Assembly (NCBI GenBank): GCA_030704615.1
Contig: CM060731.1
Coordinates: 21,514,001-21,578,000, forward strand
DNA length: 64,000 bases
From: Takakia lepidozioides
Lineage: Eukaryota; Plantae; Bryophyta
Direction: 5' to 3'
The stretch's first letter is position 1. Every line of letters begins with the position of its first letter. This document shows positions 1,949-21,223 of this stretch, piece after piece. Made by a program: the position numbers and the translations under genes. The notes below the pieces were generated by a model, which had not been told where the DNA came from, did not search any database, and saw nothing but the letters and a program-made list of their open reading frames with translations.

Positions 1949-2030
1949 CTCATTTGATTTGATTTTTGAGACAGTTCAATTTACTGATAACATTTGCAGA
2001 AACTTCAATTAAAAAGAAAAAGAAAAAGAA

Positions 2031-2203
2031 GTATGATGCCTCCCGAAAGGAGCGTAACTTATGGTGTCACTTGACCCCGAAGGGCTACTTCTAGCAAGAA
2101 GGTGCACACCTTCATGACACACCAGACGGTGGTTTGAACCCACAACCACATCCAAATCCAACGTGGTATGTGCCCATTACCACCGGGCTACATGCTGGTT
2201 GTC
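2031..2203 (-). mobile_element. tRNA-derived SINE, copy 1
   Basis: Minus strand has an A-box-like TAGCCCGGTGG and B-box GGTTCAAACC, with a T-rich tail. Clearly homologous to 31151-31320. Confidence 0.65.
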
Positions 2204-5116
2204 GAAACTTCAATAATAATTGTTCATGAACCATCCAAGGGCATATTTTGCCCAATGCAGAATCGGTCCTTAACGAAATGGGACTCAAAAAGAAATATCC
2301 TGCAATATAAGAAGCCTAAAAAATGGCAGAATCGGCCCCCCAAATCCATTACGACTATTAAGTCACTGGCCACTCTCATCCTCAACAAATGCAAAATTGA
2401 AAGTGACTAGTTGGTAACCCGTAGGTAGGCTAGGTTGCTTCCGATCCAGCGTATTCCCTCCAAAAGGGAGTTGCACCCTGAGGCAAGGAGGCTCTAAATT
2501 ATTTACCCTAACTTTGGTTGGCATACAATAATAGTAATATTTGGGTGTATCAGGGGAAAACCCCAAGTGGAAGATCGGTATTGTTTCGCATTTATCATAA
2601 TCTGTTAACTGAGAGGAGGAAAGCATGGGCCTCTGTTTGTGCAGCTATTTCCAGAGCTTCAGAGCAACGAGGGAGAAAATTGCTTGAAGATTTCCCTCAG
2701 TCCTGGGGCAAAGGTGACTTGCTCGGCTCCAGTCTACCCAACATGCGCTTTACCTGAAATCTATCCATCCCCAATCAATGGGAAGTCCCCTGGTGATGGG
2801 GAGGAGTCTGAATTCAACTGGCGTCACAAGAAATCTTGGGACCCGAAATTTAGAACTCAACTCAAGTTCTGATACTGGTACCTCTTGCTTCACAGATCAC
2901 CAGGGTACATTCAGAGGCTCCTTACTAATACCTCTTGCTTGCGAGATTTCTTCAGCTCACTTATCAGCTCCTCGGCTTCACAATCCTTTCTTGCTTTGGG
3001 CAGCTTTCATCTTTACTAGGATTGTTAGGCTGCTCTGCAATTTCGAATCTCATCTCCTTCTTTACGACTCATCTGACTCCTGCCTGTCTCTCATTCGTTT
3101 CTCACCAACTCGTCTCTTAAATCGGAGCCTCCTGCTCTCTCCTCTTAGTCTCTCTCTAACCTTTCCCTGTTGTTAGCAAGTTAGCTAGGGTCACGGGGAA
3201 GTTCCCCCTCAATAAGCCTCCACGGCCTCTCTAGGTGGTTATTTTTTCCACCTCTGTGACTTTTTGTTCCTAATAATTTGATTAAAAAGGCCTCTGTCCC
3301 CTTAGTCTAAGAAAATAAAAAAAATAAAAAATAATAATTTTTTTAATATATATTGTTGGCATACATATATATACAGTGTCTTTTCGTTCCCAAGGACTCT
3401 TATTGAAGGTAGACACTTGCCTGTTCGAACTCAGTTATGTTAGCTTTCCTGCCCTCCCCTCCCTCCACTTATCGGATGCGGAATTGAACCCCGGGCAACC
3501 CCCAGGTGAGGCTCCACATGTGCCGAGTGCTGGTTGTACCACCACACGCCCTTCCGAGCCTGGCATCTCAGCCTAACCTAGACCCCTTCCCCGAACTATC
3601 TTCCGAACCTGAAGGTAGATTTCGAACCTGAAACCTCATCTATACTACTGTATTTCCGTGCGTAAGTTCTCGTAGCTACCGTGTAACAGAATACGGCCCA
3701 AAATACGTTAGTTTCTATCTGGCACGTGGCAAGGGTCGTTGTATTTGGTTCCAGGTTTTACTTTAGTAAATCAAGCCGCATCATTTTCGGGGTAAGTTCT
3801 AGTATTTCCATGCCACGTGGGCCGGGAAGATTGGTAAAAGGACATACAGCGCAGAATACCTACGTGGCCTGCTCCCGTGCTCAAAACAAGCCCAGCACAA
3901 CGCACTGCGCTTTTCTTGTTTCTGTTTCTCGGATCACACCTGCGTCTGATCTTCACGCATTGAGCTGTTTCAGCTGGGATTCTAGGGACGTTGACAAACT
4001 TTTTTTCGTCCTGGACTGGCGGTGGAGCTGCTGAATGCTATCCCGTTGAGTAGACATGGCCATTGTTGCTAATGGTCATTGTTTCCCCAAGCTTGTTCCA
4101 TCATTTTCCCGCATGGCTGTTGTCTAAGTTTTGCAGACCAGAAGGCCTTATCTCTGATTTTGAGGGGTTGGAACACATGTATTGTTTGTTATGGTGCTCC
4201 GGGGAGCTTGTAATTGGCAGTCATTCGGAAACATTGAGATTCTGGATATCTTGTTGTACATCCATACTCCCTCAAATTTGTCGAGCTTTCTAGCGTCCGT
4301 AGTGTTTCTAAGGGTCGCCGCTCTCATCACACACAGGGATAATTTTTTAATAGAGACGGGCTGGCCAGGGAAGACTGTGTGATTGCTGGAAGAGAGAATG
4401 GCAGTATGTCCCTGCAGCACGGGATTATGGCAGCTTCTTCCGAATACTGGTCCTGTTTCTGGCTCTCTGTCACCTCAGGTACGGAAAGCAGGGATAGAGA
4501 TGGAATTTTGTTGGACCGAGCCTTGTTATTTTGATTGGAAATTAATTGTGTGTGTGTGAGAAGGAGAGATAACTTCATTTTTTGCTCTCCCCCTCATCAA
4601 GTAGCTGGATCAACGTGTAATGAGGGAGTGGATGGTGAAGGAAAGCCAGCCAGGCAGAGAGAGACAAGTACAGATAACGGTCTGCAGGGGTGAGTGAGAA
4701 AGATGGAAACTTGTCGCCGCTTGTTACTGTTTGTGAAGGTGGTATTTGAAAAGAGATGAAATTTGTCCTGATGTTGAGGCATTGCTTCCATCTTAACGGC
4801 AGCCCCCTCTTCCCTTTTCCACCATCCATCTCTCCTATGTCTTGCACAGGCAGACTTGCAGGGACTCCTATCATCTGGCAGTTGCAACTCGAGATTTTAA
4901 TGTTGATCTATCGTGATAGGGTTGGATGCTGAGGACATAGGAGTTCATCCTCTAGAATCCTTCAGAGTTCCATACATTTTCTTGACAAACAGTACTCCAA
5001 GTGTGTGATCATCATATGGTTTCTTGTAGAGAAGCAAGTTGTCTGTTGAAAATGCGATTGATAAGCTCTTGTTCATTTTGCAGCTGAGGCCAGAGAGGGG
5101 AGTGCAACGCAGGGAG

Positions 5117-8100
5117 ATGTCGCTTTTCGTAGCAGGTCCACAAGGTGCATGCTATGTTGGGTGGGGTGAAACGGAGGGTACTCATAGTCAGTGTATGTCT
5201 GCTGACAAATCTGGGGTCTCAACCTCCCAAATCGTGCCTCGAAGGTCATTCAATTTCAAAAGGGAAATTGGTGGGGTTTGTCAACTTCGAAAGACCTGCA
5301 GGAGTGTTGGAAGCCTCGATAGGAAGCCTGCAGTGGAAGTGCAGGCCCGGGTTCAGGATGCTATGGTACAGGAGACCTATGTTGTAGAGAAAGGATTTGA
5401 TAACAGGGGCAAAGGGTGTAGGGACCGCAACCTAAGGCAGACCAATAGTGGCGGGGGACGAATACGTCGGGTGCAAGTTGCTAGGAATAATGGAGTTGTG
5501 GACTTGGAAGAGCAACGCGGACAGACAAAGCCTACCAAAGGGGGAAGCTCAAGGTTGAGACTGAGTAACCAACGGAATGGATCGAAAGTGCAAAGAGATG
5601 AGGAAGGAAGGCTTTATTTTGAGTATGAATTTAGTGGAACAGACTCTGATGAGAGTGAGGAGCTTGATGGCAACGCCCTTTACACAGCAGAAGAATTGCA
5701 AACCCGGCAAGCAGGTGATGCCCCAAGTTTAGCTGAGGCAGGTTCTCTTGTGGAAATGGGTTCGTCTTCGGCACCTGGAAGAGGTAGCTTTCATTTCCCT
5801 TTGCTAGTCCGATTATTAGGCTTTTAGTGCTTCCCAGTTCCAATCTTATGGAAACTGCAGCTTTTTATCTGCTATATGTGATTTCATTTCCCTTCGCTGG
5901 TCCTATTATTAGGCTTTCAGTGCTTCCCAGTTCCAATCTTATGGAAACTGCAGCTTTTTGTCTGGAATAGGTGATAGTTGGTCGTTCTGTGTGTGGAGTG
6001 TTCTTTTGCATTGGTGTCACCTGACTTAACCTTAGTCTTGTGTCATTTGCAAGTAAGAGAACGGTCTCAAACATGACTGGTTGGAAGGCTCACTGACGCC
6101 GTGTGGTTGTTGTATTAAGCACCCTCACAACTTCTCTGAAAATCCCTCAAATGTATATAGCACATGAGGGGATTTTCTGCTCTATTCTGAAACTTTCTAT
6201 AAGGGTGTTTGAGTGGATTAGCCAGGTCCAGCTGTAGAACCTTCGATGCACATCAAAGCTAGCTTTTGCCCCACATAATGACTCAATGCCTAGCAGAGAA
6301 ATGTTAAATGATGGTATTTGTCCATGTGACCAAGTTGCAAAGAGGAAACTAGAATCATTCACAGATGCTATGCTTATAAATGGCTACTCCCTACCCAAGT
6401 GCTTGAGAAATGGTGTTCTTTGTGTTTACTATTGACCATGTAGAGGTAAACTCTCTTCTAAAGCTTTGGTGCCTTTGTTAAGCAATGATGATTGGCTTTG
6501 TCACATCACACCAATCAACTGATCGAAGCCCCGTGCATATGTTAGTGTTGCAAGTACTTGCAGTGGCTGCCAGGATTTTATCTGTTTCAAAAACTATAAG
6601 GTACCTGTTTTTGCAGAGAGGGGGCAGACACCTGCTGAGACACCAATCTGTGTGGCTGATGTGGAAGTTGATGGCAGCTTATCTGCCGAGCAGAGTTTCA
6701 CTGGCGAAGTAGATGTGGAGGAGGGTTGGATTGGTGTTGGAGGGCAGAAACCTAACTCACTGGTGGAATTACCAGGGGGGCAGCGAGTGGTCCAGCTAAT
6801 GGGTGCCTGGGATGGATTGGCCGGGAGATTACCTGTAGACTTCGCAAGAAGCACTGGGTCTCAGCTTCTGTTGACGGCATTGAAGCTCACAGTCTCTGGG
6901 TTGCAGCATGCTGCCCCTTCTGAAGATGGTCGCACTGCTCTCTCTGTGGCTCTTTCCACTGCGTACATTCTGGCTGATCTCCGAGTGAGTTTATATCTTT
7001 TAGCAGCTTGCAATTCACTCTATCTAGCAATCGAGATGTAGTCAGTGTCAGAAGTTCTGAAGTAATAAGTCATCATCTCCCTGTTGGGATTGTCCATGTA
7101 ATTCAAGCTGGAGGTTTGGACTCAAAATTTGCTGATTATGCTTGTTTACAATTTCTCCACAGTGGCAGTGGCCTAGTTAGGACAGTAAAATAACTGAGTC
7201 CATTTCAAAACTTGAAGGCAGTTGGTGCTAATGGATTCTTTGGCTCGTGAAAATCCAGTGTACTGAACGGCTGACAAAACTTTAATTTGTAGGAAGCTTG
7301 GGGGTGCTTAAGTTGGCAAATAATTGCAAGGGTGGATTCAGCTTTCATCATGAAGGCGAGGGCAATGAGCATGTGCTCATGGGGTGGGAGAGTCTGCTGA
7401 TCTGCTGGGTCTGACAGATGGATGCTGAAGTGATAGCTGCCGGGCTTCTTCGAGAGGTTGTAGAGGCAGGGTATGTGAGGATTGGTGCGGTGGAACAGAG
7501 CTTGGGAGAACGGGTTGCCCAACTCCTTCATGATTGCTTCCGTGTGAAGCACATGCCTTCCCGCGTGGATACTCTGGACGAGGACAGTGCTAAGGCAATC
7601 CGGCAGTTCTGCCTGGCATTCCATGATGTGCGTGCTGTGGTTGTAGAGCTTGCAGTGCGACTAGACACCATGCGACACACACAAACACTCCCAAGATACC
7701 GTCAACAGATTCTAGCACTTGAAACCATGCAGATATATGCCCCTCTGGCGCATGCAATTGGAACTGGCACCATGAGCCTTGAGCTGGAAGACCTTGGCTT
7801 TTGGGTCCTTTTCCCAGATTCATATACGCACATTGAAAGCTGGCTGAAGAGGCACTGGGCCAATGGCGACAGCTTGGTGAATGAATGTCGGGGTAGACTG
7901 CTGGTGGCCTTAGAGGAGGATCCAGCACTACAGGAGCTGCTGGATTCAGTCACAATATCTGGTCGTTTCAAGAGCCGGTACAGCATCATGAAAAAACTAC
8001 TGAGAGACGGCCGCCAACCTGAGGAAGTTTATGATGTACTTGGCTTGAGGGTTATTTTGACCCCCAAATCTGGTGGGAGTGCCATAGATGAGAAGGAAAG

Positions 8101-11100
8101 AGGACAGCGCGCTTGCTACAGGGCCATGGTGGTTGCGACAATTCTTTGGAAGGAGTTGCCGGGCAGGCTTAAGGACTACATTGTTAGGCCTAAGCAAAAT
8201 GGGTATGAAAGCCTGCATCTGGCAGTCTGTTTGGATGATCGTGGGAATTGGTCTCCACCCATGGAGATTCAGATTCGCACAGCAGCCATGGATGCCATGG
8301 CTGAGGGTGGTGTGGCCTCTCACTCTTTGTACAAGGGGGGCCTCACTGAACCTGAACAGGTTGGTACCTCTAATGTTGAACGTTTTTCTTATTTTACTTA
8401 TGTTGTGCTATTTCCTTTTGTCATTGTAGACTCTAATTTTGTAACTTGTAGTTGCTCTTAACGCTTTTCACCTACACGCAAGTTCTGGTATATCCATTCT
8501 TGCTGACTTGTTTCATTTGGCTTTTCTGTGGGTGGTCAATCCTTCCAGATTGGTTACCTGAAGGATTTCATGATCGCCGCAGCTGATGTGGCAGCTTCTC
8601 GATTTTCTGACCTTGCGGGTAACACAGTGGAGGTTCTGGAAGGGAAAAACTCACTGGTCAATAATAGTGACCAGATTTTCTCACTATTTGATAGAAATCA
8701 GGATGGGCTGATTAGCATGGATGAGTTCAAAGAGGTTATGGGGGAGCTTGGAGCTGATGGTGATGATGCCCATGAGCTCATGCAGCTTGTGGATTCCAAT
8801 ACTGACGGTACTGTCAGTATTGAGGAGTTCGAAGAGTTCCGACGGCAGGTTCTCTCTCTCTCTCTCTCTCCCTCTACCTGGCTAAATCCAAGGAATCCAT
8901 TCAGGCTGCAGTGCTCAAAGGAAGCATGTCGGCTTGTTAGAGCAGCTTATGTGGCTGTTGAGGGTGAGTTTGGCATACCTCCCTTAAGTATGGGGTCAGT
9001 TGAATTGCATGCCTAATACCAGATACCCTAAGATAATGGAATCTATTTCTTGGAAGCAAGACCGTCCTGTTAAACAGGCCAAGTCTTGGCGGAAAAAGGT
9101 TGATGAGATTTGTAAGTTTCTGAATATCAGTCCTGATGACTTGACCCTACTGGATGAATCTGACCTGGAGGGGGTTGTGTCCAAAGCCATGTCTGATGCC
9201 CAAAGACTGTCGGAGGAAAATGAAGTTAAGCATAAAACTTCCCTGAACTTGTTTCCAGTCTGTGACATGGGCAAGGACCTTAAGGATGCTGTCAAGGGCC
9301 TACCTACCCTTGGCACTGGACTGAAATTCAAACTCAGGGCAGGAAGCCTACCTTTGAACAATAAACATGTGGGCAAGTGCCTCTGCGAGCGCCTTAATGG
9401 CAGTTGTGGGAAAATAACCTGCAGCTGAGTTGCGGTGTCAAGCTGAACCCTAGAGGATGTGAACCCCACAAAGGCTCTGAGAGGGTCAGTTTCACGCAGA
9501 GTCGATGGCCGTAAGGGTATGGCAAGCCAACATTCGCAGGGAATGGCAGGAGTACATTCTCTCTCTCTCTCTCCCTCTGGTCTATGGCCACAGTGCTACA
9601 GATACTAACATTCTCTCTCTTATTTTTAATGCTCTGTTTGTTGGAAATTTCTTTTCCTGTAAGCTCCTGGGGCTTCCATGGATGCTAGTTACAGCTTCTT
9701 GTTTTCTGCTTTTGGTTTTTAAGGTGAAAGTGCAAGTGCAAATTTCTTAGAAAACTTGTACACAAAATACCTCAACGAAATGAAGAAAGATTTGAAGGAA
9801 GGAAGCCATAAAGGTGCCAAATGAATCAGCCATGAAGGCAAGAAGCTAGAGGCCACAAAAGAAGCAAATGCATTGCCCTCTACCTTGAGGCACAACCAAC
9901 AGGATTTATCTTTTGCTCAATGGAGTTGCTCTACATTGGTTTGATTTTTGTCGATGTCTTGCTGCAGGTGAAATTATTTGAGAATTTGGCTGGAGTGGAT
10001 AAGCAATTCACGACACAGCTTGACCAAAAACTCCTCGCAGGCTCAGTAGAAAGTAAGGAGGGAGTTCGTGGAGTTGTCCATGTTACAAGCAAAGATGTGC
10101 AGGCTGAGCAGATGGAAGCCATTGAGATTTCATCAAAGAATCGAAAAGAGGGAGTGAAAGCCCCTATTGGAGAACCTGCTAATGCAGTTGACTTCTCTTC
10201 AGACTCCACGGTAGAAAACCTAGAAGAGGTGCAGCTCCAAGTGCATGAATCTCCCTCAGAGAAAATGGAACAGGGGAGGTGGATGGACAGGATTGAAGGC
10301 TCCAGCAAGGGCTCTACCAGTACCAGCAGTTCCCAAAATCATGTCGACAATCCACAAACGCGAAGCACAGCTTCTGGCAAGCAGAGTGATTACTCCAGCA
10401 ACCGGAATCTGAGTCTGGCAAAACCAGCAAAACCTGCACGGAGGACAGTGGAGACTGAAAATTTGTCGGACTTGAAGGAGAATAGAGACTTCAAGAGCTC
10501 TCCCCGACCCTCAACAGTTGTCCGAAGTCCAGATAGTTGGGATGTTAAGAACAAAGGGAAAGACACCTCACTTTTGACCGAGGTAAAGGAAGCTGGTGTG
10601 AGTGGCACAATTGATGATGAGCTGGGGGAGATTAGGAGGCAGATAGACTTGGACAACCTGGCGTCTGCTCGCAGTTTATTGCAGAAGGTATGTACAATAA
10701 AGTGCTGTGTGTGTGTGTGTGTGTGTGTGGCTTGCAGGCCCTGCATACTATCCAGAGTGATGTGTGGTAGCTATAAAATAAAATCAATAACCTGCAACCG
10801 GGCTGTTAGGTTGGCATGTGGACAAGTAGGGTTTAGCTTTACCTGCAGGGTTTAGCTTTCAGGGACAAGCTAAACCCTGGTGGGTGCAAACCCCACAGAA
10901 GGACCCAGGAGGGTTTGTTGGCCGTAAGGCTATGGCAAGCCAATGTTTGCAGGGAACGGCAGGAGTACATCTCTGGCCTGTGTGAAGGGCTTTCTAGAGG
11001 AAATCTGGAAAGCCAGAACTAATTGTTTATATCAAGGTAAGTACAACTACTGGAGTGAGCCCCTCGCAAAGGTAGTTTCAGTTCCATCTTGTTCCGCCCA

Positions 11101-14100
11101 AACTGGGGGGGTTGAAAGGCTACAGCAAACATCATCTTGAGTACATCTGGCCTGAAGACAGTACTCATTTTCTGGGACAATGTCAGGTGTATTATCATCA
11201 GAGAGCAACCTCTGCAGGACCATGAAGAACATAGTCCCTGCACTTCTGTTCATCAACTTTCAAAATCTAGAGGCTGAGCCTAAACATCTGGCCCCGTTGG
11301 GGTCTAATTGCTGGGCATCTCACACACAGCAAGATTGCGAGGGGCTTTCTAGACGAAACTTGAAAGCCCCAACTAGTTGTTTATGTCAAGGTAAGTTACT
11401 GAAGCGAGCCACTCACAAAGGTAGTGTCTGTTCTGCCCAAATTGGGTGTGGCTTCTATGGACGGCAAACAACGTCTCATCAGTACATTCCGGTTTTGCAT
11501 CCATTGATTCAGAGTTCCTGTAACGTCACTTGGCTGCACAAAACCAACCAGGTCTCAGATGTGTAAAGCCCGATGTCTGGTCTTCCTGGTTTTGAAGCCT
11601 TTACTTCTAATGGCCCACATAGAGATGATTTTCTTGGAGGGTGGTACTAATCTTTGCTTTTGTAGTCATTTCAGCTTTGGAAGCACTTCATGGGCTTTCA
11701 CAATTTACAGGAGTAATAAACTTGTATATTGGGGTGGGCAGCTGTCAAGGAAACATCCTGATGATGCCAACATCCTGGTTCATTTTGCACACCTTGAAAG
11801 GAAAGGAGGTATTTTCAATATAATCCAACTTCTGTGTTGAGTTTCAGAGTTCAAAGTTGAAGATTGTATGTGATTGTATGCTAGTGGTTTCAAGGTCTGA
11901 GTTGGAGTTTACAAAAGGGGAAACAAAAGGATTCTATGCGTCTGTTCTGCATTGGGCTCGCCTCCTTGTCTCTTCCACTAATATTCATTTCTGGAATCTT
12001 GTCATTGATATTATAACTTTTCTTCTATGCACTATATGCATCTCTAATATTGTTTCTTGTACTGAGTTTAGGCTGAACTCATGAAACTGATTTTGATAAT
12101 TATGGTTGAAGTTTAGCATTCTACAACTGATAAACTTCTCTGATGTTTTTTGCAGGGGATTCGGTAGCAGCTGGAGCCTTTTACTCCAAGGCAATCCAAG
12201 CATTCAAGGAACAAGGAGATCGTGGTTTTGCCTATGTACGTGCGCTGCAGGCCTGGGGCTCATTGGAGGCTCAGGCTCGCAATACAACCTGGGCACGATT
12301 CCTCTTCATCGAATCCATTCGTGCTGCTCGCAAGGTAAATGAGCTTGTTGTTTCTTTCTGAATTGGAAAATGTTCACCGCTATCAATTCCCTGTTGTCAC
12401 CGGCTGTCCATTGAGAGGTGTGACAAGTGCCTGATAAGGAATACTCCATCATATTGTATTACTCTCGTTTCCGTTTGTGGTGGCTTTTACATAGTTTGAT
12501 CCAGTACCTACACTAAGAGAGGTCCAGGGAGCTTGCGACGTGTCAAGGGTGGAAGATTTGTGAGCTCAGTTGTGTTCGGTGATTGAGCTGACATTGGGGT
12601 TCCTCATTGCAGGGAGAGACACAAGGTCAGAATGAGCTAAAGGGGGGGGGTGTCTTTGGACTTCATGCATGGGCAATGCTGGAGCAAAAACTAGGGAATT
12701 GGGGTAAGGCGCGTATTCTGTTAGAAAGGGCAGAAAGCCTCCAGCCAGGTAATGCTGTTGTCCTCCAAACAAGAGCCCTTCTGGAGGCACAGGCCCATAA
12801 CTATGCAGCAGCCCGCTACTACTTCCGTCTTGCTGTTGAGGTAGCCCCTGACGATGTCAAGTGCTGGCAGGTAAGGATGGTTTTACAATCATTTTGCAAG
12901 CTTCCTCACTGTACTTCTTGACCCGGTACCTTGACAAAAAGGCCATGCCTAGTCTGTCAACCTTTGTTTAAGTTGCGGTCTCCCTTGTTATTGGTCATGG
13001 GAAGTCTCTCAAATCTGGTTTCTCAAGATGATTTGTGCCTTACTGGAAGGAGCTGTCTTGCTGCAGGCATGGGCATTGTTCGAGGCCAGTCAGGGCAAAC
13101 CAGGAAAGATGCGGCAGTACTTCAAAAAGGCCCTTGAACTAGAACCGGAGGATATGCACTCGTTGCAGGTCTGCTTCTCTGGTCCCCAATTCCATATCAT
13201 TCCTGATGGCATGAAAGTGTGATTACTCAACTTCTAAGATCTCAATGGTGTGATTGTAGTAACTGAGTATTGTGTCAAAGTTTGGCAGTTACAGCTAGTT
13301 CAGTAAGGAGGAGGGAATTGGAAACATTATACATGTGCTTTACTGTTTCAGGCCTGGGCACATCAGGAAGCTTTAATTGGCTCTGATGCGTCAAGAGTGC
13401 GTGCCAGAAAGCTGTATCAACGTTGCGTTGAAGTGAACCCTGAGAGTGTGCACTCCTGGCAGGTAGATTGCTGTCTCTTACACGCTTTCCCTCTCTCTCC
13501 ATGACCACGTACACGATATTAACATGTTGTCGTTGAGAGTTGTTAGGTGTTTCTTCTGGTGTAGTTAGATATAATGGCTGGGCATGAGCATAATTTCAGG
13601 CTGAGCTTCATATCCTGGTATCTGTGACTAGTCCTGTGTAGTCAGTACTCTGCAGGGACTTGGATAGCAAGAGCCACAACCAATATTTGGAGGAAAGATC
13701 ACTTGATACATGTCTACCTCTCGCACTTCTCTCTACTGATATCCTCTTTTTAAATCAGTTGTTTCCTTACAGCAATAGTGGAGAGAGCTTGGAAATTGAC
13801 CTCCTTACAAATGACATGAATGTTTATCCCTTTGTGAAGTGCAGGCATGGGCAATACTGGAGGAAAAGGCTGGTAACTTCCCTGGGGCTCGTATTCTTTT
13901 TGAAAGGGGAATTGGTGCTAATCCTTCCAATGTTCCCTGTCTTCAGGTGGTCTCTCTCTCTTTTCATCTCCTATAGATATGGATTCCTGTAGAAGGTGAC
14001 CAAATCCTGTCTGCTTCTCAGTTAGATCTTGAAGTTAAGCCGTCTTGTGGAGGTTTGTGACCATACGTGTTTGTTAGTGGTTATAGGCTTATGCACATAT

Positions 14101-14747
14101 GGAGCGGGTCTGTGGAAATTTGGAGGCTGCCCGAAAGTTATTGCGGGCTGCTCTTACTGTGGAACCTGAGAACGCTCCTAGCCTGATGGTGCGTGCTATA
14201 TAGTTTCTGATGTTTCTGTTTATTTGGAAGGTGACATGTTATGAGAACCAATGCTCTTTGACAGTCTTCTCCAACAGAGGATGAGAATGACTGAGGGTTG
14301 AGATGGCTAGAATGGATTGTCTTGCTGTGTGTTGGGTCTCAGCAGAGGTGCTATATTGGGGTCACAAGCATACTGAAATGACACTGTGCTCATGTAGAAT
14401 TTGGTGTCATTGAAGTGTGGAATTATGTATTGGTGGATTTCCATGTACAGGAATCGGCTCTTGTGGAACAGGGTTTGGGAGACGAAGAAGCAGCGGCAGA
14501 TTTGTTCAAGCAGGCTGGCATAGCAGACAAGCGAAAGAGTCGTGTAAAACGACAAATGTTCGAGTCCCGTAAGAGAACTCCGCACTGGAAGAAACCCCAA
14601 TCGAATCAAAGTGCAAAGAAGGGTGGCACGTCAAGCAGTAGAAATTTTAAAAAGGATGCACCTGCAGAGAAGCAAGTTCTGGAGGGGTATGTGACTGCAC
14701 GACTCCCAAATAGTGATGTGGGTCTGTCACAATCAAGTGAAAGTTAG
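5117..14747 (+). CDS. CRSH: Ca2+-activated RelA/SpoT homologue (CRSH/RSH4-type (p)ppGpp synthetase, EF-hands) with C-terminal HAT/TPR repeats; 13 exons, ~1404 aa
   Basis: Exons 5117-5783, 6617-6984, 7418-8359, 8549-8848, 9968-10687, 11742-11808, 12156-12334, 12613-12870, 13067-13168, 13352-13462, 13845-13946, 14087-14188, 14451-14747, all GT-AG with matching phases. Motifs: YAPLAHAIG, GRFKSRYS, DVLGLRVI, RLKDY..PKQNGYESLH, EIQIRT, AEGGVASHSLYK. EF-hands DRNQDGLISMDE and DSNTDGTVSIEE. Repeats of the form AWA.LE...G....AR..F. Confidence 0.88.
5788..5958. repeat. ~90-bp tandem duplication (2 copies) at the start of CRSH intron 1
   Basis: TTTCATTTCCCTT.GCT.GTCC.ATTATTAGGCTTT.AGTGCTTCCCAGTTCCAATCTTATGGAAACTGCAGCTTTTT occurs twice. 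Confidence 0.85.
8877..9556 (+). mobile_element. 5'-truncated LINE fragment (RT C-terminus and 3' end) in CRSH intron 4
   Basis: MPNTRYPKIMESISWKQDRPVKQAKSW...GLPTLGTGLKFKLRAGSLPLN is near-identical to the LINE ORF at 60722-61711 (-). Flanked on both sides by (TC)nCCTCT. Confidence 0.85.
10735..11420 (+). mobile_element. LINE 3'-end fragments in CRSH intron 5
   Basis: ACVKGFLEEIWKARTNCLYQGKY matches ACVKGFLEDIWKTRINSLYDGKSY at 60538-60750 (-). The GGCCGTAAGGCTATGGCAAGCC tail is shared with 9505-9555 and 35255-35293. Confidence 0.7.
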
Positions 14748-15249
14748 GTAGAGCAACATTTCCTCTTGTTAGAGCCCGAGTTTTTTTTCAGGGGCTTCTG
14801 TATTGTATTAGAAAGTGGACTGAGAAGAGGTTTGATTGTATCTATGAGTGCAGCATTGCCACTAGCAAAAAGTTGCTGTTTGAGATATTTCCACAGTCAT
14901 TAGTATGGAGATTGATGGGCTTGGAGTCTGTTTATTATTGAGTCCACCCTTTTTTCAATCTGTACACTGGAAGGTGGTTTATCTAGATACACTAGTTTTA
15001 CTGTAGTTTCACTGTAGCTGGAGATTTCAGACATTGAACAGCATTCATTCAGCCCATGTGAAGGCAGTGCCAAGGCTGCCCTGCCACAATGGGATTCAGT
15101 TGAATAAGAGAGAAACATAACAATGGAAAGTTTGTTAGAGTCTCTGAGTACTTGTATGGTTCATTCTTGTGTGCAGAGGAAGTGTGGTAACTGTTGTTAC
15201 ATCAGATTCATTTGGGGTATTGTAATTGACCCACCGATGAGATTAGTTA

Positions 15250-16340
15250 CATTAGCATGACCCCCCACTAGGACAAGTAGATCTACTGGAGTACGGGAGT
15301 TACATAGCAGTAGTATTCATGGTGCGCACAGCTTTGGATAAGCTTCTGTTCCTCCCATACAGCGATCTCTACAGTAACACTCTTTCTTCATGGTTTCAAG
15401 CCAGTCTGTGCATGGTTTGATGCATATTACCGCATGAACGACCAACTCTGTCATAGGACTTCCATGAGCTTCTTTACAATCCATGTCAAAAGCTGATGCC
15501 GAACAATTATGAAGGGACTCCAGAACACACATCACTACAGTGGAACTTGTTGAATCCAGATTCTGTTTCATAACCATTATAGAGCAGAAAGTAGTACACA
15601 CACAAAGGCCTCCTCCCTTGCTTGTGATCAAACCAAGAGTCAAACATGAATATGTTCCCATTTCCTGAAATCAGTGAAATGAGATCTCTCGCCTCACACT
15701 GATCCTGTTTTGCACACACACACCCACATTTTCTGCAAAGTGAATGATGTTTCAATCCAGGAAATACTACATCCACAGTGAATTCTACGGAGGGCGTGGA
15801 TCCAATTTGTGAAGTCGGTTGTCCTCCCAGCTTTGCTATCCCTGCTTGACCGCATGGGGTGAGATTCAAATATTCATAACCAGACATTGGCAAGAGGTTT
15901 GTATTTTCACCGAACCATATTGGATGTGGTATCCCTTAGATTGCAGCTGCTCCAACAAGTTCCCCTCACAAGGTCTTCCCCCGCTGCTACCAAAACTAAT
16001 GATGCATCCTGCAAAATCAAAGATATGTCATAAAGTTATCAAGATCATTCAGAGCACTCCTCGAGGTACGTTTCCTCTCTCTCTCTCTCTCGGCCCTACG
16101 GCGACGACCATTGGAACCGGGAGCCCCACCTCCATGGTCCTTAACCTTGGGAACCTTGTCAAGAATGTGTGATGTTTGGGTGGCCATGGAAGCAGTATCA
16201 ACTTCCGGAGACTCATCCAGGTCAGGAGATGAAGAGGGACAAGAATTATGGGAGGTTGATTTCTTCTTAGTGTCCACAATGTGATCATTCTAGACAAATC
16301 TCCCAAAACTTCCATACCATGGTAACATCTCATCAAACAT
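15250..16340 (-). mobile_element. Possible highly degenerate LTR retroelement remnant
   Basis: PPT-like GTGGGGGGTCA-TG on the minus strand near 15258-15270. Frameshifted gag-like string (KQGRRPL..YY). Weak support only. Confidence 0.3.
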
Positions 16341-16749
16341 CTCCTTGGTGAAACTGACAGGTAGTTTGTAGCTTGTCTCTCAACCTTGGACTAAAGATCT
16401 TTAGAAAGATCTCATTCTCTATTTTTGTTTTTGGAAAATAAAAATTCTAATTCTAATTCTAAAGATCTAAACCTTATAGCCATCACCAATAATAATTTAA
16501 TCCTTACTTTTCTTGCTGCAAGGATTGCTTAGAGTCATTCTAAGAAAATTATATTTGGAACTAGGGTTGCACACTGACGAGGTCATGTCAAGTTACATGA
16601 AACCTGACGCCGACGCGGGCCTGCGTCATGTCTTAAAATAAGTACATGTAATCGGGTGTAAAAATGAAAATGTTTGCTAGCTGTCCCGCTTTTATCCAAA
16701 AAAATTAATTAAAAAACAAATCAGGACCGCCAGCTTTGGCGGTCCGGAC

Positions 16750-17215
16750 CAGTGTTGGACTGGTATATAGGTGAAGGACTGGTATCTGTACTGGTATATG
16801 CACTGGTCTTAGATACCAGACCAGTCTGGTATCATTTGGGAGAATACTTGGTCATATACCAGACCAGGCTGGTATCAGTCTTTCATACCAGCCACAATAC
16901 CAGTACTCCACCACCGTCTTCCTCATTTACTCTGGTATACATACTGAATTAATTTATGTACATATTGGTACTTAAGTTTATTTACTTCTATATGTATATT
17001 TTATTTGTTTTCACTTGATACTTGCCATTTGATAAATTTGTAACTCAAGATGGCTTTGGAATGATACCAGAGTTGATATCTCATACCAGCTGGTATTGTG
17101 GTCATGATACTCATATTGTGGTCATGATATTCATACCAGTATCTGGAAAAGAAATACATCCACCATTATATAGACCAGTCTGGTGTGTAAAAAACTTGAT
17201 ACCAGTCCAACACTG
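16750..17215. mobile_element. Non-autonomous hAT-type MITE (466 bp)
   Basis: Perfect TIR CAGTGTTGGACTGGTAT / ATACCAGTCCAACACTG. 8-bp TSD GTCCGGAC at 16742-16749 and 17216-17223. Many subterminal CTGGTAT/ATACCAG motifs. Confidence 0.85.
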
Positions 17216-18441
17216 GTCCGGACGACCGGGCTTTATCCAAAAAAAAAACAAACAACAAACTGGCACAGCCAGCCTAGTTGACAATCCTAATTTCATACCT
17301 AAATATATTTTTATTTTTCTTGAAGAAATTGGATTTGCTATCCCAAAATTATCATAAACAAATTGGGACCACCAGAAATGGCTGTCCCAGATTTTTAATG
17401 AAACTTACAAAACAAGCCTCAAGCGGCAATTGGCTCTCTTGCGTTGTTTTGGCACAACATAAGAGGAAGGTAAGACTAACAATGTAGTAGATTTTAGTAT
17501 GCAAAGTGAAGTGAACTCAGAACGGCTGCAGTCACCATGTGAAGGATAAAGAACATGGGCAAAGGGGTTCACCAGTTTAAGCCCCCGGCGGAAAACTGAT
17601 GAACCGACATGCTGCGTGTCTTTACCGAGCATAAAAATCGCCTCAAACCTCAAACATCGTGTGCTGATTCAACCAGTAACACCCCCTAACACACTCATAG
17701 GAGAGCCCACACCCCTATAGAAAAGCTATCTTCTTTCATTAGACTTGTGGCCAAAATCCCACACAAGTCCCATATACATCCCAGTTGCTGAGCCAGTCAA
17801 CAATGTTATTGACCTAAGTCATAGCCTAATAAAGAATCATAAATAAGAATCACATGAATTCTGTACAATCTGAGAAGGCTGTAAATATTTGTGATAGAAA
17901 TTCCTATCTTTATCTACAGGTATTGATCTGAGAACGGTTTTTCAAAATCCAATATCGGCCGGTTTCTCATAAAGCCGATGTTATGGGTCTAGTTCTCAAT
18001 ACCCTGATCAATACCCGCCCAACACTTGCACAGACAATGCTTCTGGCTGAAAACTGAGAGTGTGCCCAGTGAGCAAGGGATTGAGTGGGGGAAATGGCAC
18101 ATGACATTCCCATGACTATAGGCTATGAGGGACAGTCCCTACAACCCATCAGAAACCGGGTGCTCAGATTGCCACCCATCAGGTTATGCAACTCAGACTC
18201 AAGCTCTCAGCCTTAGGCCCAGCAAAAAACAAAACGTCCGCTCAGTGGTTCTTGGATTGAAGGGTCATTATCGTCATCTACAAGCATGTCTATGATGTTA
18301 AGGGTAGCGGACTGGAGACCATGCGAGGTTGGGAATGCATACTGGTATAGAAGGGCTCCTGCAGACAAGATCTTCCTATGAACTGAGACCTCCATAAATG
18401 CTAAGGAGTTGCAAATAAAGCAGAAAAAGATGCCCTTTTTG

Positions 18442-21223
18442 TTACCCTAGATTCAAACTCTGTCTTCGTTGCTTAGAAAGGAACCAATACAACAACCCTG
18501 CTACAAAGAAGCCGACAAACCAGGAATTGTCATAGAGAGCTGCAAGCACCCTTGGAATTCGCTGAACTTGACCTGCTGCAAGAAGAAACCCAGGGATATT
18601 TGGTGCAATGCCAGCAATAAGGGCCAACACAGCTGAGACGTTGAAGCCTTTTGTGTACCAATATGGGCCTGATTCATCCATGGAGTAGAGAGCTCCAATA
18701 TCGAGGGTCCGACGCCTGACTGCGAAATACTCGACCAGCATAATCCCCCCCACAGGACCCAGTAAGGCAGAGTACCCTATCAGCCAGGTGAAAATGAAGC
18801 CCTGGCTAGATTGGATTAACCGCCAGGGGGCCAAGAGAATTCCAAGAATAGCTGTTAAAAGCCCACCACCTCTGAAGGAGAAGATAACAGGGTTCAAATT
18901 CACAAATGCATTAGCAGGGGCAACTATGTTAGCGGCAATATTGGTTGTCAGGGTTGCCAAAATAACCCCCACTAGAGAGAGAAGGATGGGAAAGAAACCA
19001 CCAATTAGCCCCAGCACTTCGATTGGATCAGATATTGCCCGCCCAAATATCACCACTGTTGCTGAGGTGACAGCCAGACCCACGAATGTGAAGGCCGCCA
19101 TAAAGAGAGGGAGACCTATTGCTTGCCCTGTCAGCTGATCACCCTGGCTCTTTGAGTACCTTGTGAAATCTGCATCAAAATGCAACAGTTAATGAGCTGT
19201 CAACATAATGGAAGACCAAAATTTGGACGAGGTTTGACAGTTGAATTAACATAATCCATGGATTGCGATTTGCAAGTCAAATTATGGTAGCCAGAGCTTT
19301 ACCTGGTGAAGCAAAAACTTACTCATATGGCAATTTGCAACTCACTGCTATAATAAGTGGATATACTTTCTGGCAACAAAGCTGGAAGTCCCAATGGGAA
19401 GAGAGAGAGCTCCCAAAGAAGCTATTGCACGGAAAGACTCTGCTTGCAATACCGTGTCCATAAACCTCATCTCCATGGGAAGGAGACAGGAAAGAATGTA
19501 CACTTAGTATAATACTTAGTCATCACACATGCTGTACCATTGACAGACACAATCACTTCTCCCAGTTGTGTGACTACTCAGTGTGGACCCGCTATGGTTC
19601 TAGCATGCAAAACAACCTGGTTTGATGCAAACTAGTCTATCGGGTCAGTAATGTTTTTATTGAAAGAGAAAAGGAGAAAAGAGAGAGAACAACAGAAAGA
19701 AAGAAATGAAATGGTACTTTATAACGTACGTGGAAAGAAAGCAATTTATTGAATCCACAGGAAGCCAAAACGCCCAAAGGACAGAGAGGAAGAGACAGAG
19801 TGAGAGAGGGGGAGTGGGTGGTGTTGGTGTTTCGATGGGAAGTACCAGGTATGTTAAGGCTGAGAGTTGCCCAAAAACCGACATTGGCAGTCAATGCAGG
19901 GAAAAAGGTTTGCCAAAACTGGCCAGCTTTAGGTCCTCCGGGCACGAACTGTGAGGGAGTCGACAGCATTGGGCCAAACCCACCCGCAGCTACATAAGCC
20001 CATGCAAGCAGCGCGCCTGACAAAACAATCAGAATCGGCGCACAGTACTTTTCCAGCTCTCGAATGCTCTCTATTCCATTCCATATAATCCCAACCTGCA
20101 GGCCAGCCAGAAAAGTTTCGATCGTCAACTTCTAACCAAAAAAGTGCACTTGAAGGTGGGGGGAAGACATCAAAAAGCGGAATTGCACCTGTAGCAACCA
20201 GAAGATCATGAAGCAGCCGAATTCAGAAGCGCTGATCCCAAGCCACGAAATCACAGGCCCAACAAATCCGCCCTTCGCAAGAGTATTCAGGAGCTGGTAA
20301 ATTGCGTTGCCTCCTATCCATGTCTGTATTCCAAACCATCCACATCCCACTAAGGCCCTCAATAGAGCGGGTACACTAGCCCCTCTAATCCCGAAGGAGG
20401 CTCTCGCTAAAACAGGAAAAGGGACTCCATACTTGGTACCCGCATGCCCACTCAAGATCATGGGGATCAGTACCACCAAATTTGCTATGAACACTGTGGC
20501 TATCCCCTGCCACCAGGCCATACCCAATTCCACTAACGAACCTGCCATGTAGTATGTGGGAACCCCCACAACGAGGCCCACCCACAGGCACGCCATGTCC
20601 AAAACTGAGAAGATTCGGCCTTCCGGCATGGTGGGTGCAAAATCGCTGTTGAAGAGGGATTTGTTGGGATTCTGGGGAGTAGATGGACAAATGGGCTCCA
20701 GCATTGCCCTTGCCATTTTGCCGGGAATATCCACATATCCACTTGAAGCCCTAATAGCGCTTGAGGTCGTCTGGTTATCTTCCTCTGCAAATGATGCTGA
20801 ATTGTCGACAGTCTCCACAGTTACCTCCTCTTTGTCTGAGCTTGCATAATTCAAAAGCCCCTCGGACTCCTTGCCCCGCTTCTTCCATTTCCAACCGAAT
20901 AAACCTTTCACAGAAGGTCCAGAATCCGACCAAAGACCTGTGTTTTTCCATCCCTCTTTTGTAATCCACCTGCTGGAGTTAGAAAACCCAGCAAAATCAC
21001 CCATTTTCACCACCCCACATTTGGAGCTGTACAAGTTTGTGAAAGGTGGGGAGAGATACACATTTCTGCAGGGAGAGGGGCTAAGACTTGTCTTACGGGT
21101 TCTAAATAGTAAGGGAGCTGTAAAAGTAGCTGGCACAGTTAACCTAGAGCTGAGGTGAGATATGTATGGACTCGTGAATTTGGACTTTGCATCACAACAT
21201 GGAAACATCTGCATAAGGTTCAA
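18442..21223 (-). CDS. NCS1: Nucleobase:cation symporter-1 (NCS1, PLUTO-like plastid purine/uracil permease); 3 exons
   Basis: Exons ~21223-20189, 20095-19846, 19169-18442. Motifs [68 protein letters not shown]. Ser-rich, transit-peptide-like N-terminus. Confidence 0.93.

Follow-up and report, generated by a model that had tools for sequence, protein, structure and literature searches.

A moss RSH4/CRSH synthetase gene with an HCF107-type HAT repeat arm that appears ancestral in green plants

Introduction

Does a single moss gene join a calcium-sensing (p)ppGpp synthetase to an array of helical HAT repeats like those of a plastid RNA-binding protein, and what might such an arm do? The question is raised by a window of 64,000 nucleotides from Takakia lepidozioides (GenBank assembly GCA_030704615.1, contig CM060731.1, positions 21,514,001 to 21,578,000; all coordinates below count from the first letter of this window), in which an earlier note, made from the letters alone, had read a CRSH-type synthetase as continuing past its two EF-hands into a repeat array. 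We find that the synthetase-array fusion is one spliced, expressed gene. Its product is almost certainly an RSH4/CRSH ortholog in the ancestral green-plant architecture.

Ca2+-activated synthesis of ppGpp has been demonstrated for Arabidopsis and rice CRSH (PMC6881373, PMC5633626, PMC10107265), and activation of the Arabidopsis enzyme has been linked to the Ca2+ transient at dusk (PMC10107265; PMC5633626). It is not yet settled how plastid RSH proteins monitor chloroplast status, and the domains gained by RSH4 have been proposed to be regulatory (PMC10107265). The suspicion of the earlier note that TPR-bearing RSHs might already have been reported proved right: Table S2 of Avilan et al. 2019 lists a TPR on Marchantia Mapoly0002s0095, Klebsormidium, Chlorella and Ostreococcus tauri, and the same paper cites Ito et al. 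2017 for a C-terminal TPR on RSH4 in some green algae (PMC6881373). It also assigns the Marchantia and Physcomitrium orthologs to RSH4, marking those of Physcomitrium C in Table S2 and leaving that of Marchantia blank (PMC6881373). This literature presents the TPR arm as a domain gain in certain algae. We did not find its ancestral status, its moss-wide and fern presence, its HAT type or the existence of free copies stated there, Ito 2017 being known to us through its citation; nor did a literature search return a functional study of the RSH4 repeat arm in any species.

Results

Synthetase and repeat array are encoded by one transcript

RNA contigs from two runs of separate studies, X1 and X2, were mapped on positions 8540-14530 of the window (5991 letters), that is, 3' of exons 0-2; the RNA nature of the runs, itself deduced, is made secure by their spliced joints. 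The runs contain 0.43 and 0.40 of the words from 7400-14750, near the exon share of that stretch, and contig depth falls to zero within introns 6, 7 and 10 in both. The decisive molecule is contig 1 of X1 (2972 nucleotides), which carries 1110 nucleotides upstream of exon 4, with its loose end at the end of exon 3, and then runs through exons 4-9. In it, position 8848 corresponds to record 1413 and position 9968 to record 1414, an exact 8848>9968 splice; this joint is derived from the flanking coordinates (8842 at record 1407, 9964 at record 1410), since the CT repeat at 8843-8883 was skipped in mapping. The in-phase splice from the 8848 donor to the linker exon, on which the proposed fusion depended, is thus present in RNA, as is the second joint singled out beforehand, 10687>11742. 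The latter belongs to a set of GT-AG joints found in both X1 and X2, which also includes 11808>12156, 12334>12613, 13168>13352, 13462>13845, 13946>14087 and 14188>14451. The remaining joint, 12870>13067, is present in X2 only. The X1 contig and one minor contig of X2 still contain its intron, intron 8 (12871-13066) (X2 depth 5.45 retained versus 16.2 spliced, contig depth being a poor gauge of isoform proportions), and retention brings a frame stop at 12919 that cuts the array about in half.

The resulting gene model is as follows.

Exon 0, 4398..4478, plus strand: ATG at 4398; candidate transit-peptide start, located by tblastn with moss ortholog N-termini (49-66% identity)
Exon 1, 5084..5783, plus strand: remainder of the N-terminal extension, a bryophyte-conserved segment; an AG acceptor precedes 5084
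Exon 2, 6617..6984, plus strand: N-terminal helices of a degenerate HD domain; 47-60% identity to orthologs
Exon 3, 7418..8359, plus strand: remaining HD domain (HD changed to RE) and intact RelA_SpoT domain; Pfam 3.5e-23 and 8.7e-30
Exon 4, 8549..8848, plus strand: two canonical EF-hand loops; Pfam EF-hand_1 4.4e-14; seen in RNA
Exon 5, 9968..10687, plus strand: post-EF tail helix of CRSH (about 33 residues), Ser/Glu/Lys-rich disordered tether (about 190 residues) and first array hairpin
Exon 6, 11742..11808, plus strand: HAT array; joints seen in RNA
Exon 7, 12156..12334, plus strand: HAT array; joints seen in RNA
Exon 8, 12613..12870, plus strand: two HAT repeats; Pfam TPR/HAT; the following intron 8 retained at times
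Exon 9, 13067..13168, plus strand: one 34-residue repeat; Pfam and RNA
Exon 10, 13352..13462, plus strand: one 37-residue repeat; weak Pfam HAT match (E 0.012), under the curated cut-off
Exon 11, 13845..13946, plus strand: one 34-residue repeat; seen in RNA
Exon 12, 14087..14188, plus strand: one 34-residue repeat; seen in RNA
Exon 13, 14451..14747, plus strand: final repeat, conserved basic capping helix DKxKSRxKxxMFxSRK, variable tail and stop codon

The 13 exons of the earlier note hold together: their AG and GT ends and phases are consistent, and they give 4215 nucleotides, or 1404 codons plus a stop, with no internal stop. The translation start that it placed at 5117 has to be given up. 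That ATG is internal, and an upstream exon (exon 0) matches moss ortholog N-termini, aligning with those of Ceratodon, Physcomitrium and Sphagnum; it has a GT donor at 4479 and is in phase 0 with the acceptor at 5084. The corrected model accordingly comprises 14 predicted exons and 1442 residues. The 27 codons of exon 0 specify no charged residue and six Ser/Thr, and the stretch that begins at ATG 4398 is the putative start of a plastid transit peptide.

Could two adjacent genes have been wrongly joined, a CRSH that ends at 9016 in intron 4 and a separate HAT gene behind it? HAT genes without RSH do occur in other plants, an annotated Sphagnum isoform of 920 residues is free of repeats (P0293), and intron 8 is retained to some extent. 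Against these stand the contig that crosses 8848>9968 and 10687>11742 exactly, the conserved CRSH tail that sits in exon 5, the dispersed repeat that makes up intron 4 from about 8876 on, and the uninterrupted full-length open reading frames on transcript contigs of other species. The two-gene arrangement is refuted as the main form, and we regard it as extremely improbable. A transcript that terminates in intron 4, with a terminal exon stopping at 9016, was likewise rejected as a model, its read-through sequence being dispersed repeat.

The enzyme half is a CRSH-type synthetase

Takakia domains were searched exon by exon, with the Sphagnum, Physcomitrium and Marchantia orthologs serving as proxies for work on the whole array and the whole protein. 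Pfam places HD_4 and RelA_SpoT in 7418-8359, EF-hands in 8549-8848 and TPR/HAT in 12613-13462, with no TGS or ACT domain in the Takakia exons; in Physcomitrium the HD_4 match begins in the region corresponding to exon 2. The synthetase motifs GRxK, DxxGxR, KxNGYxSLH, EIQIRT and HxxYK are kept when compared with the orthologs and with one structure-solved Rel protein. The LLHD of the hydrolase has become LLRE, as in other CRSH, and both EF loops are retained in all 14 RSH-containing proteins checked. A CRSH-type synthetase with two EF-hands, as first read from the sequence, is therefore well founded on Pfam, intact motifs and canonical loops. The top named homologs are all of the CRSH type, and exon 3 of Takakia nests in the moss clade (support 99/99).

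Seed-plant CRSH has in common with it the dead hydrolase, the synthetase, the pair of EF-hands and the tail helix behind them, with 52-58% identity in exon 3 for the seed-plant proteins retrieved; it differs in its size of about 450-550 residues, with no tether and no array. The statement that the Arabidopsis and rice proteins end at the EF-hands needs correction, because most seed-plant CRSH continues into a tail of 30-45 residues that resembles the first 33 or so codons of the exon at 9968, the bryophyte-conserved part of that exon. This resemblance indicates that the splice between exons 4 and 5 belongs to normal CRSH.

The fusion is widespread and appears ancestral

A search with exon 8 alone retrieved nine long proteins that also hold the RSH and EF region, namely Marchantia MARPO_0002s0095, those of Closterium, Mesostigma, Chlorokybus, Cymbomonas and one pedinophyte, and three others. 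With the Marchantia protein as query, Riccia, Calypogeia, Ceratodon, two Physcomitrium genes, Sphagnum, the fern Pteridium and Ostreococcus are added. An arm of about 600 residues is present on every full-length bryophyte and streptophyte-alga RSH4 retrieved and on at least two fern RSH4 proteins, and the exon order is identical at two other moss loci. The search for the same architecture among bryophyte and streptophyte proteins thus yielded orthologs in liverworts, mosses and streptophyte algae.

The closest known counterparts can be compared directly. Marchantia RSH4 (Mapoly0002s0095 / Mp1g27830, P0126) shares the whole architecture and matches the Takakia exons in colinear order (1412 versus 1442 residues), with 69% identity in the synthetase exon and 47-73% in the repeat exons; it differs by ordinary sequence divergence, and its linker is unlike that of Takakia. 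The orthologs of Physcomitrium patens (XP_024363061.1, XP_024374482.1) and Sphagnum (CY35_15G044400) carry the full array and are 70-77% identical in exon 3; the Physcomitrium accessions have no TPR note in Table S2, where the moss-wide spread is unstated. The RSH4-TPR proteins of Klebsormidium nitens, Chlorella variabilis and Ostreococcus tauri share the C-terminal TPR array and are more divergent. That of Chlorella carries an extra FHA domain, and two algal-like RSH4-EF-TPR proteins from our searches (P0295, P0325) likewise have an additional FHA domain (PF00498). Ostreococcus OUS43685.1 has EF-hands and repeats, as does the Takakia protein.

A tree of the exon-3 region, midpoint-rooted without an RSH1 or RSH2/3 outgroup and built from rows that do not include the Arabidopsis and rice sequences, follows plant phylogeny. 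Takakia forms the sister group of the remaining mosses, Sphagnum included (moss clade 99/99, inner split 91/87), a position that would suit an early-branching moss. TPR-bearing fern proteins are the closest group to seed-plant CRSH, as its sister (91/84), and seed-plant CRSH is nested among fused forms. Because of this nesting, the fusion appears to be ancestral in green plants and the tail to have been lost in seed plants. Among the matches listed by searches with word, length and rank limits, no orthologous array was seen on named seed-plant proteins, an absence that is unproven with the fragment P0161 unplaced. A lineage-specific gain in Takakia was discarded, given the same architecture from chlorophytes to ferns and the exon-3 tree. 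The fusion is not a new architecture, occurring widely in algae, bryophytes and ferns and figuring already in the 2019 table. The earlier note had allowed that it might turn out to be both widespread and characterized; the former is the case, but we found no functional study in the literature that would make it the latter.

A tether predicted to be disordered leads to an HCF107-type array

The array consists of about ten helical hairpins, nine repeats anchored on E11 and one that starts at the end of the linker exon, rather than the 8-9 counted earlier; both the repeat anchors and the AlphaFold model of the Sphagnum ortholog lead to this number. The model has a confident RSH-EF module, a linker of about 195 residues with a predicted local distance difference test (pLDDT) score of about 30, and a solenoid of ten confidently modelled hairpins (pLDDT 93) with a long capping helix. 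The predicted template modelling score is 0.45, and no fixed orientation is therefore predicted between the RSH-EF module and the solenoid. The array is thus predicted to hang on a flexible, disordered tether of about 200 residues, which varies in length and sequence among orthologs and contains a short LxKP motif.

The repeat profile (Q/H5, W7, E11 as anchor, G15, A20, R21) matches that of the HCF107 repeats. By hhalign, the array aligns to an Atlas-named HCF107 protein with an E value of 1e-41 and 28% identity, and the nearest Atlas clusters include ones named Mbb1, so the likeness to the HAT repeats of HCF107/Mbb1 seen at first reading is borne out. The likeness extends to about 10-11 repeats and to 28-31% identity across most of the array; in HCF107 the repeats come without a further domain, whereas the Takakia protein adds RSH and EF domains. 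Judged by sequence, the repeats are of the HCF107-type HAT class and the array is not HCF107 itself. Orthology to HCF107/Mbb1 was considered and dismissed, since 28-31% identity compares with 50-77% among true orthologs and HCF107 falls into a group of its own among the search results. The arrays and tails are basic in 15 of 15 proteins checked, with isoelectric points (pI) of 8.95-9.9.

The array also occurs without the synthetase

Proteins that have the orthologous array but lack the RSH and EF regions are found in Selaginella, Diphasiastrum, Adiantum and Ceratopteris, and also in Closterium and one moss. At the Selaginella, Diphasiastrum and Adiantum array loci, no RSH was found within the gene or across 10 kb of flanking sequence. 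The RSH-free genes of Diphasiastrum (L006), Selaginella (L007) and Adiantum (L008) share the intron positions of exons 7-13, with intron 8 missing from the Selaginella gene; their arrays are 52-57% identical, and several RSH-free array proteins retain the LxKP linker motif. Those of Selaginella and Ceratopteris are automatically annotated as Mbb1-like and are not HCF107/Mbb1 orthologs. In a moss-like transcript (P0309, L010:324-2534), an exon-1-like N-terminus runs straight onto linker and array without RSH or EF; it is likely a paralog that lost its enzyme by internal deletion after duplication. Some of the other RSH-free models (P0122, P0307, P0224, P0267 and those of Closterium) may be partial transcripts or split models. 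Free and fused forms are interleaved in the array tree, which suggests that the array separated from RSH several times, and its conservation without the enzyme suggests in turn that it binds a ligand and serves a function independent of the synthetase.

Discussion

Taken together, these results lead us to read the Takakia protein as the ancestral form of a Ca2+-activated, hydrolase-dead RSH4 whose autonomous HAT arm may dock on plastid RNA or ribonucleoprotein, a reading to which we give a probability of roughly 0.55. The protein would be imported into the plastid, as its N-terminus and family suggest. A rise in stromal Ca2+, for example at dusk, would then load the EF-hands and switch on ppGpp synthesis, to judge from the intact motifs. 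The HAT solenoid, folding by itself at the end of its tether, would bind plastid RNA or ribonucleoprotein (about 50-55% for this step), with the outcome that the synthetase is kept near the gene-expression machinery or that the arm does an RNA job of its own. Seed plants would have dropped the arm, and several seed-free lineages keep the array also, or instead, as a separate gene. RNA is favoured as the ligand because the arrays are basic (pI 9-9.9) and because HCF107 binds RNA, namely 11 nucleotides in the psbH leader (PMC5897788).

Several observations weigh against this reading. The net charge of Takakia exons 6-12 is only +6. A register test for repeat-by-repeat descent from the HCF107 array made no register stand out, though a global alignment is possible. 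Long and similar arrays are found in metagenomic nSTAND_NTPase5 proteins (P0121, P0128, P0310), which are probably prokaryotic, score at least as high as HCF107 and provide the top match for most hits outside plants, so that the repeat type is not confined to plastid RNA binders. Structural matches from Foldseek are generic TPR solenoids (OGT, CTPR, SPY and subunits of the PAF complex), and the shallow alignment of 30 rows behind the AlphaFold model could mask real contacts between the domains. Our literature search found no biochemical or genetic data on any RSH4-array member.

Part of this evidence speaks for an arm that is a protein-binding scaffold, with a partner on the nucleoid, the ribosome, the thylakoid or the RNA polymerase, and does not read RNA. 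The Foldseek matches are peptide-binding solenoids, the nSTAND proteins have similar repeats, and Pfam TPR models outscore the HAT models that also match the orthologs. A scaffold seems to us possible and on balance unlikely, given that the consensus and the nearest named eukaryotic clusters are HCF107/Mbb1-like and that the basic arrays end in a conserved basic helix. Alternatively, a ligand of the array might gate the synthetase jointly with Ca2+, much as ribosome-bound bacterial RelA is gated through its C-terminal domains; this is the strongest form of the second regulatory input raised in the earlier note. Retention of the fusion from prasinophytes to ferns would fit such control, as would the regulatory role of bacterial RSH C-terminal regions and the one proposed for RSH4 domain gains (PMC10107265). 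A disordered tether whose length and sequence vary does not, and either half persists without the other in several lineages; we consider joint gating improbable, more so than the scaffold. With a disordered tether, and with arrays that have repeatedly persisted in the absence of RSH, a module that binds or localizes autonomously is more plausible than direct allosteric control.

Within the preferred RNA-docking reading, a more specific proposal is that in algae, bryophytes and ferns the HCF107-like arm ties the synthetase to a particular plastid RNA or ribosome, so that ppGpp synthesis is localized to plastid gene expression or gated by its state. We put this forward tentatively, as the less likely outcome. 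If true, the protein would be a counterpart of ribosome-bound RelA made of eukaryotic parts, and the RSH-free copies of lycophytes and some ferns would represent an undescribed plastid RNA-binding protein whose target was lost or handed on in seed plants.

The Takakia locus is an ordinary ortholog of a protein tabulated in 2019, and what makes it worth reporting is its evolutionary interpretation. The CRSH proteins of Arabidopsis and rice, which underlie work in the field, appear to be truncated derivatives of the arm-bearing form. Added here are the ancestral fusion, the loss in seed plants, the HCF107-type HAT assignment, the disordered tether and the RSH-free genes with the same introns.

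Other features of the window

Fragments of a dispersed repeat lie in introns 4 (8876-9560) and 5 (10770-11433), with further copies near 35.1, 59.8 and 60.6-61.4 kb and a summed RNA contig depth of up to about 2100 in X1. The repeat has no Rfam match, and an open reading frame of 142 residues at 9000 has no Pfam hit; an Rfam scan of 2000-18000 returned nothing close to the gathering score. Directly 3' of the exon 1 donor, at 5789-5974, is a 93-nucleotide tandem duplication (91% identity). Upstream of the gene, 14-1429 holds a fragmented integrase region of a long terminal repeat retrotransposon (Integrase_H2C2), followed by a PHD finger. Downstream, a convergent gene on the minus strand (18442-21223) encodes an NCS1-family nucleobase/allantoin permease (Transp_cyt_pur) with a long N-terminal extension.

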